Sequence record: OP617745.1
DNA length: 64,000 nucleotides
Strand: one strand, 5' to 3'
Shown: positions 11,865 to 57,627 of the stretch, piece by piece
Numbering within the stretch: the stretch's first letter is position 1
Layout of the letters: every line of letters begins with the position of its first letter
Made by a program: the position numbers and the translations under genes
The notes under the pieces: model-generated
What the model saw: only the letters and a program-made list of their open reading frames with translations
Told to the model about the DNA's origin: nothing
Databases searched by the model: none

Positions 11865-12686
11865 ATGACAAATAAACTTGAAGAATTTGTGAATTCTATT
11901 GCAGTACTGGATACTGAAACCAATGGTATTCTTGAAACCGATGAAATTATAGAATTTAGTATTTCATTTCCAGAATCATTGAATGATTCTATTGATAATA
12001 TTATGAATTACACCAATCGTTATAAACCACAAAAAGAAGTGCCAGCTATAGCAAGTTCAGTTCATTTTATTACAAATGAAGATTTGGAAAGTTGTGGAAC
12101 TTATGATTCTGAATTACCAACAATTGATGCATTAATGGGAAGTCGTCAATATTATGTTGGTCACAATGTACAATTTGATCGTAGAATGATGCGTCAATGT
12201 GAAGATAAATATCGCAGTGAACCTTCTCAATATCTATATGAAGATAATTGGATTTGCACTTTACGATTAGCCAAAAAACTTCATGCAGAAGATTCTGATT
12301 ACGATAATATGACTCTAAGTTACTTATGGTTTAAACTTGGGTGTTATAAGGGGCATCGTAAAGTAGAAGCACATAGTGCACGTGATGATGTTTTTATGTG
12401 TTACTCGGTGCTAATTAAATTAGTTGAAGAATGCATTTCACTTGGAATCATTGATCCAAATAATGACATTGGATCTCAAATTATTCAGTACTGTAATACT
12501 CCTATTATCTATAAAAAGGTGACATTTGGTAAACACAAAGGAATGGATTTTTCTGAATTACCAATGGATTACCTTATGTGGATGATTACAAATAGTGACA
12601 TTTTAAATACTGACAAAGAAGATTGTGATATGGATTTAGTCGCAACTTTCCAGTACGAATATAATAGAAGAACAGCAGGAATATAA
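11865..12686 (+). CDS. DEDDh 3'-5' exonuclease (DnaQ/ExoX-like)
   Basis: VLDTET, GHNVQFD, WICTLRLA and AHSARDD motifs; C-terminal TFGKHKG...P.DYL domain. Confidence 0.85.
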   Translation: MTNKLEEFVNSIAVLDTETNGILETDEIIEFSISFPESLNDSIDNIMNYTNRYKPQKEVPAIASSVHFITNEDLESCGTYDSELPTIDALMGSRQYYVGHNVQFDRRMMRQCEDKYRSEPSQYLYEDNWICTLRLAKKLHAEDSDYDNMTLSYLWFKLGCYKGHRKVEAHSARDDVFMCYSVLIKLVEECISLGIIDPNNDIGSQIIQYCNTPIIYKKVTFGKHKGMDFSELPMDYLMWMITNSDILNTDKEDCDMDLVATFQYEYNRRTAGI

Positions 12687-15233: not shown

Positions 15234-16030
15234 TGTCTGATAAAAAAGAATTACAAATTCAGGATGTATTACATCATATTGATATTGCAGATTATAAGTA
15301 CTATGATACACTTAGTGACGAAGAAAAGAAAAGTTTCACGCCATATACTGTTTTGAGATGGGTAAGTGCGTTGGACGATTCGTTATTGGTTACTTATAAC
15401 GCAAAAGAGATTGAAAATGTATTCGGTAAATGGAAGGGTGGTGGTAAAGAAGCATTAAACGAGCTTGTATTAGAACTCCAGAAAGATGGAGTTGGGGTTT
15501 TGAATGTATCAAAATACTGCCATACCGAACCTTATGATTGGCGAATCAAATTTTCAGTTAAAGACAAAAATTCCAGCGAAAAATTGATTTCCACACTGAA
15601 GGATTTTGGAATTAAATCATATGAGATTCTCCAACTGGAAAATAGTGATGTACTAAAATATCAATTAATCTTTTTAAATGATATGGTTAACGATGGATTT
15701 TGGGAAATGAAAGACCATCCTGATTTAGTGTATCAATTGATGTGTTCGGTTCAGGATATGGTTGGTGCTGAACCTAAAGTACATAACTGGATCCCGTTTA
15801 CTAAAGGTTTGAAGAATGTTAGTACTGAATTATTCAATATCATTAAACAAACCCAACCCGAATTAACACGAGAAAATATAAACGAGCTTGAATATAAAAT
15901 TCTCCTTTTATCTTACTCTAAAGAATCTTTTAAAGAACTACTTGATGATTTTGGATATCAGGAGAATGAAGTTAAAAAATTATTAAAAACATTTAAAGAA
16001 GAATGTTCGAAATATGGCAAAGAGATCTAG
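15233..16030 (+). CDS. Hypothetical protein, possibly clamp-loader small subunit (gp62)-like
   Basis: FTPYTVLRWVS...LNDMVN...HNWIP is weakly reminiscent of gp62; this assignment is uncertain. Confidence 0.3.
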   Translation: MSDKKELQIQDVLHHIDIADYKYYDTLSDEEKKSFTPYTVLRWVSALDDSLLVTYNAKEIENVFGKWKGGGKEALNELVLELQKDGVGVLNVSKYCHTEPYDWRIKFSVKDKNSSEKLISTLKDFGIKSYEILQLENSDVLKYQLIFLNDMVNDGFWEMKDHPDLVYQLMCSVQDMVGAEPKVHNWIPFTKGLKNVSTELFNIIKQTQPELTRENINELEYKILLLSYSKESFKELLDDFGYQENEVKKLLKTFKEECSKYGKEI

Positions 16031-16760
16031 TACAGGGGTAAGAAAAACCCCTATCAAGAAAATTAAAAAAGAAGAATATGTATGTTATTTCTGTGATAAA
16101 AAATTTAAAAGAGAAAATACTATACTAACACATAAATGTGTTAAACGTGATCGATATAATAATCGAGAAAGTCGTTTAATGAGAGAAGCATTAAGAATAT
16201 ATCTTTTGTTTATGAAAATAAATCATTTGCCACTAAAGAAAGACGTTGAACCACTAATGTATTTTATCAAATCTTTGTATTTTAATGACTTCTATGATTT
16301 CGCTAATTACATTCTAAATAATGATATACTTGAAAAAGAAAGATTTTTGAATCACATTATGACTAGTGGTATGTCAGTGCAGAAATGGACTACTCATGCA
16401 GTACTTGAAGAGTGGGTTCTTCATGTATTAAAATATGAACATCCAGAACGTGGTGTAGAACGTTCTATTATGGCAATAGTCGAATGGTCTGAATTGACGT
16501 CAAACGAATGGACTACATTTTTTGATAATGTTTCTCCTGCTCGTTTTATTGCATGGGTAGAAAGTGGTAAAATATCTCCATGGTTATTATGGACTGTTCC
16601 ACCGGAAGTGCTTAGAAAAATAACAGACCGACTTAGTGATTCTGAGCTTGAATATATAGTCAAATATATTGATCCTACTTATTATCAAATAAAAAGTATA
16701 AATCCTTATCAAGTATCAGTGCAAAAATTAAAAACTATATTACAAGATTCGGGATTTTAA
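16014..16760 (+). CDS. Zinc-finger (CxxC...HxC) hypothetical protein
   Basis: YVCYFCDKKFKRENTILTHKC. Confidence 0.6.
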   Translation: MAKRSSTGVRKTPIKKIKKEEYVCYFCDKKFKRENTILTHKCVKRDRYNNRESRLMREALRIYLLFMKINHLPLKKDVEPLMYFIKSLYFNDFYDFANYILNNDILEKERFLNHIMTSGMSVQKWTTHAVLEEWVLHVLKYEHPERGVERSIMAIVEWSELTSNEWTTFFDNVSPARFIAWVESGKISPWLLWTVPPEVLRKITDRLSDSELEYIVKYIDPTYYQIKSINPYQVSVQKLKTILQDSGF

Positions 16761-16763
16761 AAT

Positions 16764-17129
16764 ATGAGTATATATAAAAAAACTATCAATGAAGGTAAAA
16801 TTGATAATCTCTATCACAGAAATGTAACTAAACCAGAAGTACAGAGTATTAAAAAATCATCTGAACTTAAATTGCTCAGAAGTGGAAGTGTAACTGAAAT
16901 AACACTGGATGATAAAACATTTCAGGTTTATGATGCACATAAGATTCATAATATTATTACGTTCGTTGAACGACATGAAGATAGTATATTCAATTTAAGA
17001 CAAGATAATAATAATCTTAAAAAACAAATACAAATACTATCAAAGAATATTCAAACATTACAAAGTACTGTTACAAAATTACAGGAACAATTAAAAAATG
17101 CAGGATTCAGTTCAAACAACTACTTATAA
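16764..17129 (+). CDS. Hypothetical coiled-coil protein
   Basis: 121-aa ORF with a heptad-like C-terminal half. Confidence 0.65.
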   Translation: MSIYKKTINEGKIDNLYHRNVTKPEVQSIKKSSELKLLRSGSVTEITLDDKTFQVYDAHKIHNIITFVERHEDSIFNLRQDNNNLKKQIQILSKNIQTLQSTVTKLQEQLKNAGFSSNNYL

Positions 17130-17739
17130 AAAAGCAAGAACCGACATTGACATTGATGTAAAAGATGCAAAAGAAGTAATAAGTATTATTCCTTGTACAA
17201 GGAGTACTGAAAAAATTAATGAAAGTGGGTTAATCGTTCATAATAGTGGAGTTCATTTTGATAATATTCCTGTTGATCCTGTTACTGGGTATAGTAGTAT
17301 TGAATATAAAAAAGCCGAACAATTAGGGTATCAAAAAGTTGATATCCTTTCTAATTCGGCTTATAAGTACGTGAGAGACCGAGAACATTTAATTGAACTC
17401 GTTAATAAAGAACCACAATGGGATTTATTGCTGATACCAGAAATAGTAGAAGAATTGTCACATATTAAAAAACACATTTCACTTCTTAATGTATGGAAAC
17501 CACAAAGCATAGATGAACTGGCAATGTTTATTGCCATGATTCGTCCGGGGAAATACAAATGCCAAAGTATGAATTCATGGGATGAAGTACGTAAAGAAAT
17601 ATGGGATTACAGTACAGTACCAGTGCAGGAAGATGGTAAAAAGGTAATGTATTTCAAAAAACCACATGCTTACGCGTATAGTTTTATGATTGTGGTGCAA
17701 TTGAACGCATTAGTTGAACACATTATGTCCTCTTCTTGA
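17098..17739 (+). CDS. dnaE: Minimal DnaE-like (family C polymerase) catalytic fragment
   Basis: TDIDID, HNSGV, GYQKVDIL, FIAMIRPG and FKKPHAYAY correspond to the DnaE motifs PDFDVD, HAGGV, GLVKFDFL, LVALFRPG and FNKSHSAAY. Confidence 0.8.
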   Translation: MQDSVQTTTYKKARTDIDIDVKDAKEVISIIPCTRSTEKINESGLIVHNSGVHFDNIPVDPVTGYSSIEYKKAEQLGYQKVDILSNSAYKYVRDREHLIELVNKEPQWDLLLIPEIVEELSHIKKHISLLNVWKPQSIDELAMFIAMIRPGKYKCQSMNSWDEVRKEIWDYSTVPVQEDGKKVMYFKKPHAYAYSFMIVVQLNALVEHIMSSS

Positions 17740-18079
17740 GGGCAACATTTCTTCGTTTAATTCGTTTTTGCGGTAAATCACTTAAAGATGTTTGTGGTCC
17801 ACTGATGAATTTAATTTGTGGTGTATCGAAACGCTTAGTATAGTTTTCAAATTTTTCCATTTCTTCCTGGAAAAATAAACATACTGGAATCAGCCTATTA
17901 CTCTGAAACCACCAGTCCTCTGCTAACTGGAGTATTTCCTCTCTTTCTTTTTTAGACATAAGATCCAAGCAATAGAGTGTTGTGTATTTGGTACTCTTTA
18001 TTTTAATTATCCCAATGTAGGTATTTTCGTTGTGGTCGAGTACTGTAATGTATTCGGGAAATGCTTGGTATTGATTCAT
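17723..18079 (-). CDS. Hypothetical protein
   Basis: 118-aa ORF with a TATAAATA motif upstream (18118-18125, minus strand). Confidence 0.7.
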   Translation of the reverse strand: MNQYQAFPEYITVLDHNENTYIGIIKIKSTKYTTLYCLDLMSKKEREEILQLAEDWWFQSNRLIPVCLFFQEEMEKFENYTKRFDTPQIKFISGPQTSLSDLPQKRIKRRNVALKKRT

Positions 18080-18139
18080 ATCACTTCCATAAATATTATA
18101 TAGGTTTTAGTATTAAGTATTTATAGAAGGAAAATATTA

Positions 18140-19117
18140 ATGTCTCATAGTGGCGTATATATGTACCCATATAATCAGGAAGTATCATTAGGAAATTTCA
18201 ATATGCCATTTCATAATGAGAAAATTGTTATATACAGAGGTGCGAATAATAATTTATCCTTTACAATCCATAATGCTGATGGAAAATATACAAAAATAAA
18301 AGACAATGAATATTTGACATTCATGATCTTCGATGCAAGAAATAATAGTATTTTATTTAATACTGTACTTGATAAACAAATTCCATCGTGGTTATCTGAG
18401 AGTGGTCAGGCACGACAATCACTTGGTAATAAAGAAAAAGTTTATTATGGTTGTGTTGTTCCTGCTGGTGTTATTCAGGATACTAGTCCGGGTTTAAAAT
18501 ATCGATGGAGTATTGTCAAAACTACTATTGATGGTTCTCTTCTTGAACCCACTCAATATTTGTATACTGGACTTGATTATGAAGCATATGGTGAATTACA
18601 AATTTCAGATAAAGCTGCACCTGTGTTTGTCCCCAGTACTGAAGTTTCTAAGGATAAAAATTCTTCATGGAAGTCTATCAAAGATAGTTACAGAGAAGTT
18701 ATCAGTGATTCTTTAAAAGGTGAATATGATGTAATGTGTACTTCTCCATTAGCAGCACAAATGCAATATGGGTTAGTTGATGGATTGAGTACAATTGCAC
18801 TTTATACTGATAATTTTATTGGAAGAATACAATTACAAGGTTCACTTGAAAATAATGTACCGTCTGATGAAGAGAATTACAAATGGTTTATTATTAAATT
18901 AGATTCAAGTGAATACATTCAAAATAGTATAGATGAAAATGGATTCATTATTCCTATGAATGGAATACAGACATTTAATTTCAAAGGCAATTATATGTGG
19001 TTAAGAGTTGTGGTATGTATTCCACCAATCGAGTATACTGTTCCTTATGATTATAATACTGTGCGTAAAGAATACGATCCATTAAAAACACTTCCAAAAA
19101 TATTGATTCGTCGATAA
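18140..19117 (+). CDS. Probable structural protein
   Basis: 325-aa beta-rich ORF with ATAAATA at 18089-18095 upstream. Confidence 0.55.
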   Translation: MSHSGVYMYPYNQEVSLGNFNMPFHNEKIVIYRGANNNLSFTIHNADGKYTKIKDNEYLTFMIFDARNNSILFNTVLDKQIPSWLSESGQARQSLGNKEKVYYGCVVPAGVIQDTSPGLKYRWSIVKTTIDGSLLEPTQYLYTGLDYEAYGELQISDKAAPVFVPSTEVSKDKNSSWKSIKDSYREVISDSLKGEYDVMCTSPLAAQMQYGLVDGLSTIALYTDNFIGRIQLQGSLENNVPSDEENYKWFIIKLDSSEYIQNSIDENGFIIPMNGIQTFNFKGNYMWLRVVVCIPPIEYTVPYDYNTVRKEYDPLKTLPKILIRR

Positions 19118-54799: not shown

Positions 54800-55108
54800 A
54801 TGTCTCATCCATTATTTGATGCCAGTGATTTTACAGATAAGGAATTATATGCTAAAATTAATGAGCAAATTTTACGTATAGCAAAAGCACGCTCGATTGG
54901 TATGAGTGAATCAGTAATTAGTCAAATGCAGATGCTTTTGGATTCTTATTATACAGAAATTGAAAACAGATCAACCAAAAAGGTTATAAGTAAAATGGAA
55001 GATTCAGATCCTTGTGTGTTTGATTTGAGTTCATATCTGGAAGACAATGACGGTGTGAAGAAGAAAAATGAAAGTACAGGGAAACAGATATATAAGTCCC
55101 AATGGTGA
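54800..55108 (+). CDS. Hypothetical protein
   Basis: 102 aa with AAGGAG RBS. Confidence 0.7.
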   Translation: MSHPLFDASDFTDKELYAKINEQILRIAKARSIGMSESVISQMQMLLDSYYTEIENRSTKKVISKMEDSDPCVFDLSSYLEDNDGVKKKNESTGKQIYKSQW

Positions 55109-55586
55109 TGTTAAATGTAATCTAAATGCAGTAGTTTATGCCATTAATTGTGGTGCTGATATTCAGTACTTACAATTAATGGATTTAGATGAAAGAGAAA
55201 GATTACTTTTCAATGATAACTGTAAGAAGTTTGGTTTAGAACAACGAATGTTAGACTACACAATAGATCATGAACGTAATCATGAATTATGGTGTTATGA
55301 TCCATTCTATGATAAAATAAACCTCAAAGAATTCTTTTTGGGTAAATGTGAAACACCAGAAGCACGAGAACGAGTTCTTTATGAACTGGAATTGTATGAA
55401 TTTTACAATATGTCAAAATTACTTCGTTGCATGATTTGGTTGGTTGATTACTTTGAGGAAAATAATATCTTTTGGGGTTTGGGTCGTGGTAGTTCGGTAT
55501 CATCTTATTGTTTATTTTTGATTGGATTACATTTGGTGGATTCCTTGAAATACGATTTAGATGTTAATGAATTTTTGAAATATTGA
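55068..55586 (+). CDS. dnaE: DnaE-like N-terminal fragment carrying the GRGS motif
   Basis: RERVLYEL..., WGLGRGSSVSSYCLFLIGLHLVDSLKYDL..NEFL corresponds to DnaE GPGRGSGAGSLVAYAL.IT..DPL.FDLLFERFL. Confidence 0.8.
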   Translation: MKVQGNRYISPNGDVKCNLNAVVYAINCGADIQYLQLMDLDERERLLFNDNCKKFGLEQRMLDYTIDHERNHELWCYDPFYDKINLKEFFLGKCETPEARERVLYELELYEFYNMSKLLRCMIWLVDYFEENNIFWGLGRGSSVSSYCLFLIGLHLVDSLKYDLDVNEFLKY

Positions 55587-55650: not shown

Positions 55651-56010
55651 ATGGTAAAGCACGTATCTTATCGTGGTAAAGTTGTTGATATGGAATTACT
55701 TAAATCACAAAACCAATATAAAGCTGCAATTGGTAATGCACAACTAAATGCTCGCGGCGATAAAATTGGTCGAGGTGGTACGGTCATTAAAACGCGTGAA
55801 CAATTGATGCAAGAACGTGAAGCTGCATTACAGGTTCCTGATTTTATTCCAGTACAGAATTCTTCCAGTACTGAATATTCAACTGAATGGGATGATTCAC
55901 AATTTAATGCATTTCCTGACATTACGGAATCACCACAAGAAGCACCAGCAGAAGTTCAGACGAAAAAAGCTGCACCACGTAGGACAAAAAAGGGTTCAAG
56001 TAATGAGTGA
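55651..56010 (+). CDS. Hypothetical protein
   Basis: 119 aa with AAGGA RBS. Confidence 0.7.
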   Translation: MVKHVSYRGKVVDMELLKSQNQYKAAIGNAQLNARGDKIGRGGTVIKTREQLMQEREAALQVPDFIPVQNSSSTEYSTEWDDSQFNAFPDITESPQEAPAEVQTKKAAPRRTKKGSSNE

Positions 56011-56667: not shown

Positions 56668-57627
56668 ATGAGTAGTAGTACTTTATGGACAGAAAAATAT
56701 CGCCCACTTACTATGGATGATTATGTTTCAAAAAATGACGCCCTTCGTCAAAAAATGGAAGAATGGATCCGTACTGGTGATATTCCCCATATTGGTTTTT
56801 TTGGTCCAGCAGGAACTGGTAAAACGAGTGCGATTGGTGTTTTACTCAATGGGTTGGAACAAAACGGTCACATTGATATGGGTGATGTGACTATTCTCAA
56901 TATGAGTTCAGAAGGTATGGACGCCATTCGTGAAAAAATCGAAAGCACAGCACAGTTATCATGTTATGGAAGATACAGAATTTTTGTTCTCGAAGAGTTT
57001 GAAACTACTTCACAGCGTTCACAAGGTTCAATGAAACGTATTATGGAAGATTATCATGAAACTTCTCGTTTCATCATTACCAGTAATGAACCACATAAAA
57101 TCCAAAAACCTATCATCTCCAGATTACAAGTAATTAATATCGAAAAACACGATATTGATCAATTCATGACACGAGTACTTGATATCCTTATTAAAGAAGG
57201 TGTTGAGCTTGATACAGAAGAAAGTATCAATACAGTACAGGAATACATCAAAGCATCATACCCAGATTTTCGTAAAACACTAAATGTATTGCAACAAAAT
57301 GTCATTAATGGTAAACTTGTCCACATGGAAGATAGTATTGAATCTTCTGCAACGTACAGAACCGAGATAGTAGAAGCACTGAAAAACGGTACTATTCGTG
57401 CAATGCGTGAAAAAATTGTACAAAGTATTCCAGAAGATGAGATGGATGCATTCTTTTCTTATCTGTACCGCAATGCTGAAATGTTCAGTACTGAACCTGT
57501 TACTCTGATGAAAATCAAAGTAAAAATTCGTGATGCAGTTGTTAAACAAGCTACTGTATCAGACCGAGAAATGAATCTAAGTGCTTTACTTTGTGAAATA
57601 GATTTGATCTGTTCAGGAAATATGTAA
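56668..57627 (+). CDS. gp44: Sliding-clamp loader large subunit (gp44/RFC AAA+)
   Basis: WTEKYRP, GPAGTGKTS, VLEEFE (Walker B), ISRL and PDFRK motifs. Confidence 0.92.
   Translation: MSSSTLWTEKYRPLTMDDYVSKNDALRQKMEEWIRTGDIPHIGFFGPAGTGKTSAIGVLLNGLEQNGHIDMGDVTILNMSSEGMDAIREKIESTAQLSCYGRYRIFVLEEFETTSQRSQGSMKRIMEDYHETSRFIITSNEPHKIQKPIISRLQVINIEKHDIDQFMTRVLDILIKEGVELDTEESINTVQEYIKASYPDFRKTLNVLQQNVINGKLVHMEDSIESSATYRTEIVEALKNGTIRAMREKIVQSIPEDEMDAFFSYLYRNAEMFSTEPVTLMKIKVKIRDAVVKQATVSDREMNLSALLCEIDLICSGNM

Follow-up and report, generated by a model that had tools for sequence, protein, structure and literature searches.

Two distant genes of a RaK2-like jumbo phage encode complementary halves of a minimal DNA polymerase III alpha core

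We analyzed a 64,000-nt stretch of record OP617745.1 (hereafter, the window), which belongs to Klebsiella phage KP13-7, a RaK2-like jumbo phage (Alcyoneusvirus), and found that two of its ORFs encode complementary halves of one palm-plus-fingers core of a C-family DNA polymerase, with conserved catalytic residues in the two proteins and with co-occurrence of the two halves. The first, piece A, is a 172-aa ORF at positions 55068..55586 (+) and represents the N-terminal half of a split minimal DNA polymerase III alpha subunit (Pol III alpha); the second, piece B, is a 213-aa ORF at positions 17098..17739 (+) and represents the C-terminal half, with the catalytic palm strands and abbreviated fingers. 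The ORF starts lie 37,970 nt apart and the two products total 385 aa, in agreement with a preliminary description of this DNA, which had placed two ORFs of together about 385 aa some 38 kb from each other. We consider it probable that the two proteins are the halves of a split minimal Pol III alpha which pair non-covalently and act as an accessory polymerase of low processivity beside a family-B replicase.

A two-gene split minimal Pol III alpha has been known since 2021, when Iyer, Anantharaman, Krishnan, Burroughs, and Aravind (2021, Viruses 13:63; PMC7824862) described it from sequence in the group 2.2 jumbo phages, noted that the enzyme accompanies a family-B polymerase, and suggested a role in the synthesis of one strand or in repair. 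A 172-aa "truncated" Pol III alpha had been noted earlier in the genome paper of phage CBB (PMC5259590). Our literature search found no paper on the split Pol III alpha later than 2021, and no experiment on it from any year. The halves are annotated as "DNA polymerase" in RefSeq and as "DNA polymerase III alpha subunit" in other records, which bears out the earlier remark that annotated fragments of this kind occur in related jumbo phages.

Results

Piece A corresponds to the N-terminal part of the palm

The assignment of piece A rests on profile and structural comparisons that place its C-terminal part on the same region of DnaE. In Pfam, profile positions 17-95 of PF07733 (DNA_pol3_alpha) aligned to residues 93-171 with an E-value of 3.8e-8, above the gathering score, and the protein belongs to PHROG 11127, "DNA polymerase" (E 1.8e-85). 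With hhalign, residues 98-172 matched E. coli DnaE 320-396 (E 6.8e-6), and a profile search of solved structures placed residues 100-171 on E. coli DnaE 321-392, ending at FERFL. Both HMMER and hhalign aligned the GRGSS motif of piece A (aa 139-143; 55482..55496, +) to the GRGS of E. coli (G361-R-G-S364), which forms the triphosphate-binding glycine-serine (GS) loop of the nucleotidyltransferase fold. The C-terminal sequence of piece A (...GLGRGSSVSS...DLDVNEFLKY) stops two residues past the FL of the FERFL equivalent, where the hhalign columns put E168, a Glu that is nearly invariant in the phage family, at the position of E. coli R390.

An AlphaFold2 model of piece A, built on an alignment of 59 homologues, had a pLDDT of 85.6. 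Residues 72-172 superposed on E. coli DnaE 276-394 with Z 9.6-9.8 and an rmsd of 2.7-2.8 (next unrelated chain, Z 3.4), which identifies them as the N-terminal part of the Pol-beta-like palm, while residues 1-71, a short N-terminal region specific to the family, have no DnaE counterpart in the superposition. The residues W75, R102, E106, L119, G137, G139-R-G-S-S143, S146, L149, L151, H155, L164, and F169 are invariant in the 59 homologues. Pfam, hhalign, and superposition thus agree that piece A ends at the equivalent of DnaE GRGS...FERFL, as had been claimed from the letters of the sequence.

Piece B carries the catalytic aspartates and abbreviated fingers

By sequence, piece B matches known polymerases weakly. 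The Pfam Pol III finger domain was found with a sub-threshold E-value of 0.023, and the best PDB profile match (E 0.44) was weak but collinear, running through the MPDIDIDF, KMDFLG...RPGP, and FNKSHAAGY segments of M. tuberculosis DnaE1. The protein is also a full-length member of PHROG 11778, "DNA polymerase" (E 1.8e-103).

For comparison, the motifs of E. coli DnaE start at residues 361 (GRGS), 388 (FERFL), 401 (DFDVD), 553 (KFDFL), 638 (FRPGP), and 757 (NKSH). Near the N-terminus of piece B (MQDSVQTTTYKKARTDIDID), the DIDID motif (aa 16-20; 17143..17157, +), aligned to MPDIDIDF of M. tuberculosis DnaE1, corresponds to E. coli D401-F-D403-V-D405, so that D16 and D18 are the equivalents of the catalytic metal ligands D401 and D403, and D20 is the equivalent of D405. 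The KVDIL motif (aa 80-84; 17335..17349, +) occupies the hhalign columns of E. coli K553-F-D555-F-L, with K80 at K553 and with D82, the third catalytic Asp, at D555. Two finger motifs follow: RPG (R149-P150-G151; 17542..17550, +), placed on E. coli R639-P-G by the hhalign and HMMER alignments, and KKPHAYAY (aa 187-194, with K188-P-H190-A-Y-A-Y194; 17656..17679, +), aligned to FNKSHAAGY of M. tuberculosis DnaE1 and equivalent to E. coli N757-K-S-H-S-A-A-Y, that is, to the (N)KSHxxAY motif.

The AlphaFold2 model of piece B, built on an alignment of 64 homologues, reached a pLDDT of 93.7. Its residues 8-212 superposed on E. coli DnaE 394-784, Taq 456-838, and PolC 966-1296 with Z 9.8 over about 200 aligned residues, compared with Z 3.5 for the next unrelated chain. 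The top Foldseek matches of both pieces were exclusively DnaE or PolC, with a probability of up to 1.00 for piece B. Among the 64 homologues, which reach down to about 40% identity, D16, D18, D20, H48, G51, P58, D82, Y89, W108, P135, A142, R149, P150, K152, W169, H190, Y194, Q201, and N203 are invariant, and K80 is nearly so. Piece B had been described as carrying all three catalytic Asp equivalents, in DIDID and KVDIL, and D16, D18, and D82 are indeed both equivalent to E. coli D401, D403, and D555 and invariant.

The two pieces meet within the palm and lack most of the remaining DnaE domains

In the superpositions, piece A ends and piece B starts at the same DnaE residue, 394. This seam cuts through the Pol-beta-like palm, leaving the GS loop and the FERFL helix on one side and the DxD strand on the other. 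The palm features of the C family, namely the GS loop and the three catalytic acidic residues (E. coli G363/S364, D401, D403, and D555), are all present, but only across the two chains.

The spacing of motifs shows how much of DnaE is missing. The distance between DxD and the KHAGG equivalent is 32 residues, compared with 109 in E. coli, a deletion of 77 residues. This gap before the KHAGG-equivalent strand we take to be the thumb, following the domain limits of Lamers 2006; no thumb domain is seen in the model, which has at its place just one helix and a beta-hairpin. Both finger motifs are retained, and the structural alignment extends as far as DnaE 784; the fingers are shortened by about 80 residues between RPG and KSH, and everything past DnaE 784 is absent, so that the tail of piece B beyond the KSH-equivalent motif has 27 residues compared with 404 in E. 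coli. Searches of both ORFs with Pfam at E <= 1 detected no PHP (PF02811), OB, HhH, or intein/Hint domain. The pair thus has neither the N-terminal PHP domain of DnaE nor its clamp-binding motif, OB fold, and tau-binding C-terminus. The earlier statement that no PHP active site, OB fold, or clamp-binding region can be recognized and that intein halves are lacking is accordingly sustained by the empty Pfam result, by the motif spacing, and by ends at the junction that have no residues to spare.

This last point bears on whether the two products could be joined into one chain, by a split intein or by RNA trans-splicing. A split-intein DnaE does exist in cyanobacteria. Here, however, neither an N-intein ending the first half nor a C-intein opening the second was found, and no intein/Hint domain was detected even at E <= 1. 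There is no room for intein halves, since piece A stops two residues past FL and some piece B homologues start one residue ahead of DIDID; in all 80 loci sampled, the stop of piece A lies 0-9 residues past EFLK, its last DnaE-like motif. Furthermore, the gene for the C-terminal half lies upstream of the gene for the N-terminal half, and each has its own start codon and purine-rich upstream stretch. We therefore regard a joined chain as highly improbable.

Both genes are under strong purifying selection

The preliminary description had named dN/dS and co-occurrence across related phages as checks on its reading. A comparison of the window with its relatives by the Nei-Gojobori method gave pN of about 0.16 and pS of 0.77-0.89 (saturated) for both genes, and closer pairs gave dN/dS values of 0.023 for piece B (loci L006-L007) and 0.038 for piece A (loci L086-L087). 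These values show strong purifying selection on the two genes and exclude neutral decay. That the ORFs are what is left of a host dnaE, captured and now decaying, could be argued from the earlier genome paper, which called the 172-aa protein a truncated Pol III alpha (PMC5259590), but this idea is refuted by the selection analysis (dN/dS 0.02-0.04, with synonymous sites saturated), and both ORFs are intact in hundreds of viral contigs with their catalytic residues invariant. We give it practically no credence.

The genes lie in replication and recombination neighborhoods

The window holds homologues of gp44, gp41, gp61, UvsW, UvsX, and UvsY, and over positions 16000-19000 it is 99.5% identical to phage RaK2. 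Piece B lies in a neighborhood of conserved order (UvsX, UvsY, DnaQ-like exonuclease, UvsW, ..., piece B, ..., gp61 primase, gp41 helicase), in which the genes for the gp61 primase and the gp41 helicase start two genes downstream of it. Piece A is flanked by topoisomerase II genes on one side and by the gp44 clamp loader on the other. The latter gene, at window positions 56668-57627, is the gp44-type clamp loader from which a family-B replicase had been presumed at the outset. In line with that presumption, a single 1003-codon frame (1003 aa) of RaK2 encodes a complete family-B polymerase that includes its own exonuclease domain, and no Pol A was found in the RaK2 genome. The family-B polymerase gene lies outside the window, and its presence in KP13-7 is deduced from the near-identical RaK2. 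A PHP domain was found nowhere in the RaK2 genome at E <= 1.

A DnaQ/RNase T-type exonuclease is encoded between UvsY and UvsW (window positions 11865-12686, +; PF00929, E 7e-12; phrog_192, "DNA polymerase exonuclease subunit"), although the family-B polymerase of RaK2 carries an exonuclease domain of its own. We considered this protein as a linked proofreader, but it occupies the same position in just 2 of the 42 loci that extend far enough upstream, both from close relatives, and synteny gives the idea no support.

Several small genes accompany the two halves. A convergent 118-aa ORF (phrog_11637; window positions 17723-18079, -) overlaps the last 17 nt of piece B and directly follows it in 78 of 80 diverse viral loci; G23, Y36, W56, W57, N61, R62, P65, and G94 are invariant in it, and it has a basic KRIKRR tail. 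A terminator-like hairpin with a T-rich tail (17726-17744, +) falls on the stop codon of piece B, within the overlap of the convergent ORFs, and a sequence resembling a T4 late promoter, TATAAATA, lies at 18118-18125 (-), 39 nt ahead of the ATG of the 118-aa ORF. The TATAAATA motif is rare in the window, with 3 occurrences observed and 14.9 expected. Upstream of piece A, a 102-aa gene (phrog_15348; window positions 54800-55108, +) overlaps its start by 41 nt and is kept in 77 of 80 loci, and a 119-aa gene downstream (phrog_14844; 55651-56010, +) is kept in 75 of 80; the conservation of these genes flanking piece A may reflect general synteny. The small neighbors were also considered as the missing thumb or DNA-binding subunits, and this was rejected: profiles of the 118-aa and 102-aa ORFs gave no PDB-sequence or Pfam match, with Atlas leads at noise level. 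For the 119-aa gene, no family or structure match was found.

The halves co-occur and remain split across viral genomes

Tblastn detected piece B in 96 and piece A in 93 deposited phage records, with almost identical counts per genus, so the second of the proposed checks also came out in favor of a pair. A gap of 30-44 kb separates the halves in RaK2, 121Q, CBB, PA5oct, and a Vibrio phage; in Salicola phage SCTP-2 it is 116 kb. In IMG/VR, at least 585 and at least 583 contigs carry the respective halves, and both halves are present in four of the five genomes rated 100% complete by CheckV (G002, G003, G009, and G011).

The split itself persists throughout. Piece A was not found within 10 kb of piece B in any of 80 piece B loci, and the reciprocal search of 80 piece A loci likewise gave none. 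With 20 loci from metagenome-assembled genomes (MAGs) added, no fused or adjacent halves occurred among 180 loci, and the statement that the halves are never fused refers to these loci together with a length-limited word search. Piece B stands by itself as an open frame in all sampled loci, with a length of 185-246 codons. A search of 185,579 species genomes found it in only 20, all of them MAGs (L181-L200) and none an isolate genome; their assignments are scattered over unrelated phyla and include Pacearchaeota and Natrialbaceae. The contigs, some of them 283-335 kb in length, look like jumbo-phage contigs that were mis-binned into cellular MAGs.

One apparently complete phage genome departs from the pattern. 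The IMG/VR contig behind locus L147 (G010; 202,272 bp, with direct terminal repeats and rated 100% complete by CheckV) encodes an intact piece A at 97656-98132 (-; E 1.7e-50), and no piece B was found in it by unfiltered hmmsearch, by PHROG 11778, or by phmmer with E. coli DnaE and with a 565-aa phage DnaE. This genome with piece A alone could be taken to mean that the halves do not form one enzyme and that each, by itself or with another partner, is a non-catalytic component of the replisome or a regulator, as could the facts that the genes always lie far apart in different gene strings and that each half has its own tightly conserved small neighbors. Against such separate roles stand the near-perfect co-occurrence in deposited phage genomes and an invariance that falls on catalytic residues which are meaningful only jointly, GRGSS in piece A and DxDxD plus D82 in piece B. 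In addition, the C-terminal 40 residues of piece A are predicted to be mostly without secondary structure when alone. Separate roles thus seem distinctly improbable, and we retain the reading of the two proteins as halves of one polymerase core.

Discussion

Taken together, the profile matches, the superpositions with a shared seam, and the invariant catalytic motifs uphold the reading, put forward in the preliminary description, of a two-gene, intein-free minimal DnaE core beside a family-B replicase. We infer that the two proteins form a heterodimer with nucleotidyl-transfer activity. Since neither protein has a complete active site for both metals and triphosphate, they must associate if they are to work as an enzyme. 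Piece A would contribute the palm helices and the triphosphate-binding GRGS loop, and piece B the beta-strands with the three metal-binding aspartates and the shortened fingers; non-covalent pairing, without an intein, would rebuild one palm at the interface. The resulting enzyme would have about 300 DnaE-like residues, without PHP domain, thumb, distal fingers, clamp motif, or OB fold, and would most likely act as a low-processivity accessory DNA polymerase next to the family-B replicase. Gap filling, repair, or recombination-associated synthesis could be its specific role, which is speculative.

The loss of the thumb, the presence of E168 at the R390 position, and the G010 genome that has piece A with no detectable piece B count against this explanation. 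A search of sequencing runs for signs of expression turned up wastewater total-nucleic-acid libraries only, none of them recorded as RNA. With the thumb, about 80 finger residues, and the region past DnaE 784 missing, DNA binding may need other partners, or the substrate may be something other than a normal primer-template.

In another reading, the heterodimer is active as a nucleotidyltransferase and not as a templated polymerase, for instance in making or extending primers, as a terminal transferase, or in adding or modifying nucleotides on DNA. The thumb and distal fingers with which DnaE grips the primer-template are absent, the Pol-beta-like fold is common to many non-templated transferases (PMC11646218), and the primase and helicase genes are found two genes downstream of piece B. 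However, the retained RPG and KxHxxAY finger motifs are invariant, and in DnaE they are part of the domain that Iyer et al. assigned to template-DNA binding (PMC7824862); moreover, every one of the closest structures is a replicative polymerase of the C family, and all others lie at Z 3.5 or below. A non-templated transferase is therefore unlikely in our view, and an accessory templated polymerase made of the two halves remains our preferred reading.

It is conceivable, if doubtful, that the split is a requirement and not an accident. Under this proposal, the enzyme would be a thumbless two-chain member of the C family whose active site exists only at the interface and whose halves, across well over a thousand viral contigs, have been kept free of fusion and linkage; its assembly, or alternative pairing of the N-terminal half, would be a regulated step when jumbo phages replicate. 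Hints of such alternative pairing come from the complete-looking phage that has the N-terminal half alone and from the conserved small genes beside each half.

If active, the pair would be by far the smallest C-family polymerase, with about 300 homologous residues in two chains, and it could offer a natural model for what the bacterial replicase minimally needs for catalysis and, as argued by Iyer et al. (PMC7824862), possibly for the ancestral replicase. It would then also have to be asked why a second polymerase is retained by T4-like jumbo phages whose family-B replisome is complete.

Comparison with known systems

Bacterial DnaE and PolC are the only strong structural matches of the two pieces and share with them the Pol-beta-like palm, the GS loop, the three Asp, and the RPG and KSHxAAY motifs. 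The bacterial enzymes are single chains of about 1,160 aa, whereas the phage version has two chains that total 385 aa and lacks the PHP domain, the thumb (77 aa), about 80 aa of the fingers, the HhH region, the clamp motif, the OB fold, and the tau-binding region.

A compact single-chain relative was seen in one of the MAGs, where a 565-aa DnaE without a PHP domain (L198:17640-19334:-, on MAG contig PBLX01000009.1; PF07733, E 1e-41; finger domain, E 2.5e-13) is encoded about 7 kb from a split piece B, with a split piece A on another contig of the same MAG. A single phage thus seems to have the split version in addition to a compact single-chain C-family polymerase. The search for fused or adjacent halves gave no other long match than this protein. 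Unlike the split pair, the 565-aa protein is one chain and is much closer to cellular DnaE, and on visual inspection it retains an insert of the size of a thumb and, at its C-terminus, an OB-like region.

In cyanobacteria, dnaE is likewise present as two distant genes, DnaE-n and DnaE-c, which carry intein halves and whose products are trans-spliced to full-length DnaE, with the split site elsewhere in the protein. The phage halves, in contrast, have no intein, and the cut inside the palm separates the GS loop from DxD.

African swine fever virus Pol X is a member of the X family and consists of a single 174-aa chain. It provides an example of a viral polymerase with only palm and fingers that works in repair (PMC11646218). 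It belongs to another family than the phage pair (X and C, respectively), and there is no evidence for common descent beyond the fold.

The closest known system is the split Pol III alpha of Iyer et al. (PMC7824862), from which the pair described here differs in nothing essential. In both, the two halves are stand-alone products of genes that lie far apart, an NTP-binding half from the N-terminal side is combined with a C-terminal half that binds Mg2+ and template, no other Pol III domains are present, and a T4-type family-B polymerase and replisome are found in the same phage; PHROG families 11127 and 11778 correspond to the two halves. KP13-7 has the distant stand-alone genes, and the company of a family-B polymerase is deduced for it from RaK2. 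The concept itself is already published, and its remaining value lies in the biochemistry. Beyond that description, our analysis adds the position of the seam at DnaE residue 394, the deletion of the thumb, statistics on selection, the finding that the split holds in all of 180 loci, and a genome with an orphan piece A.
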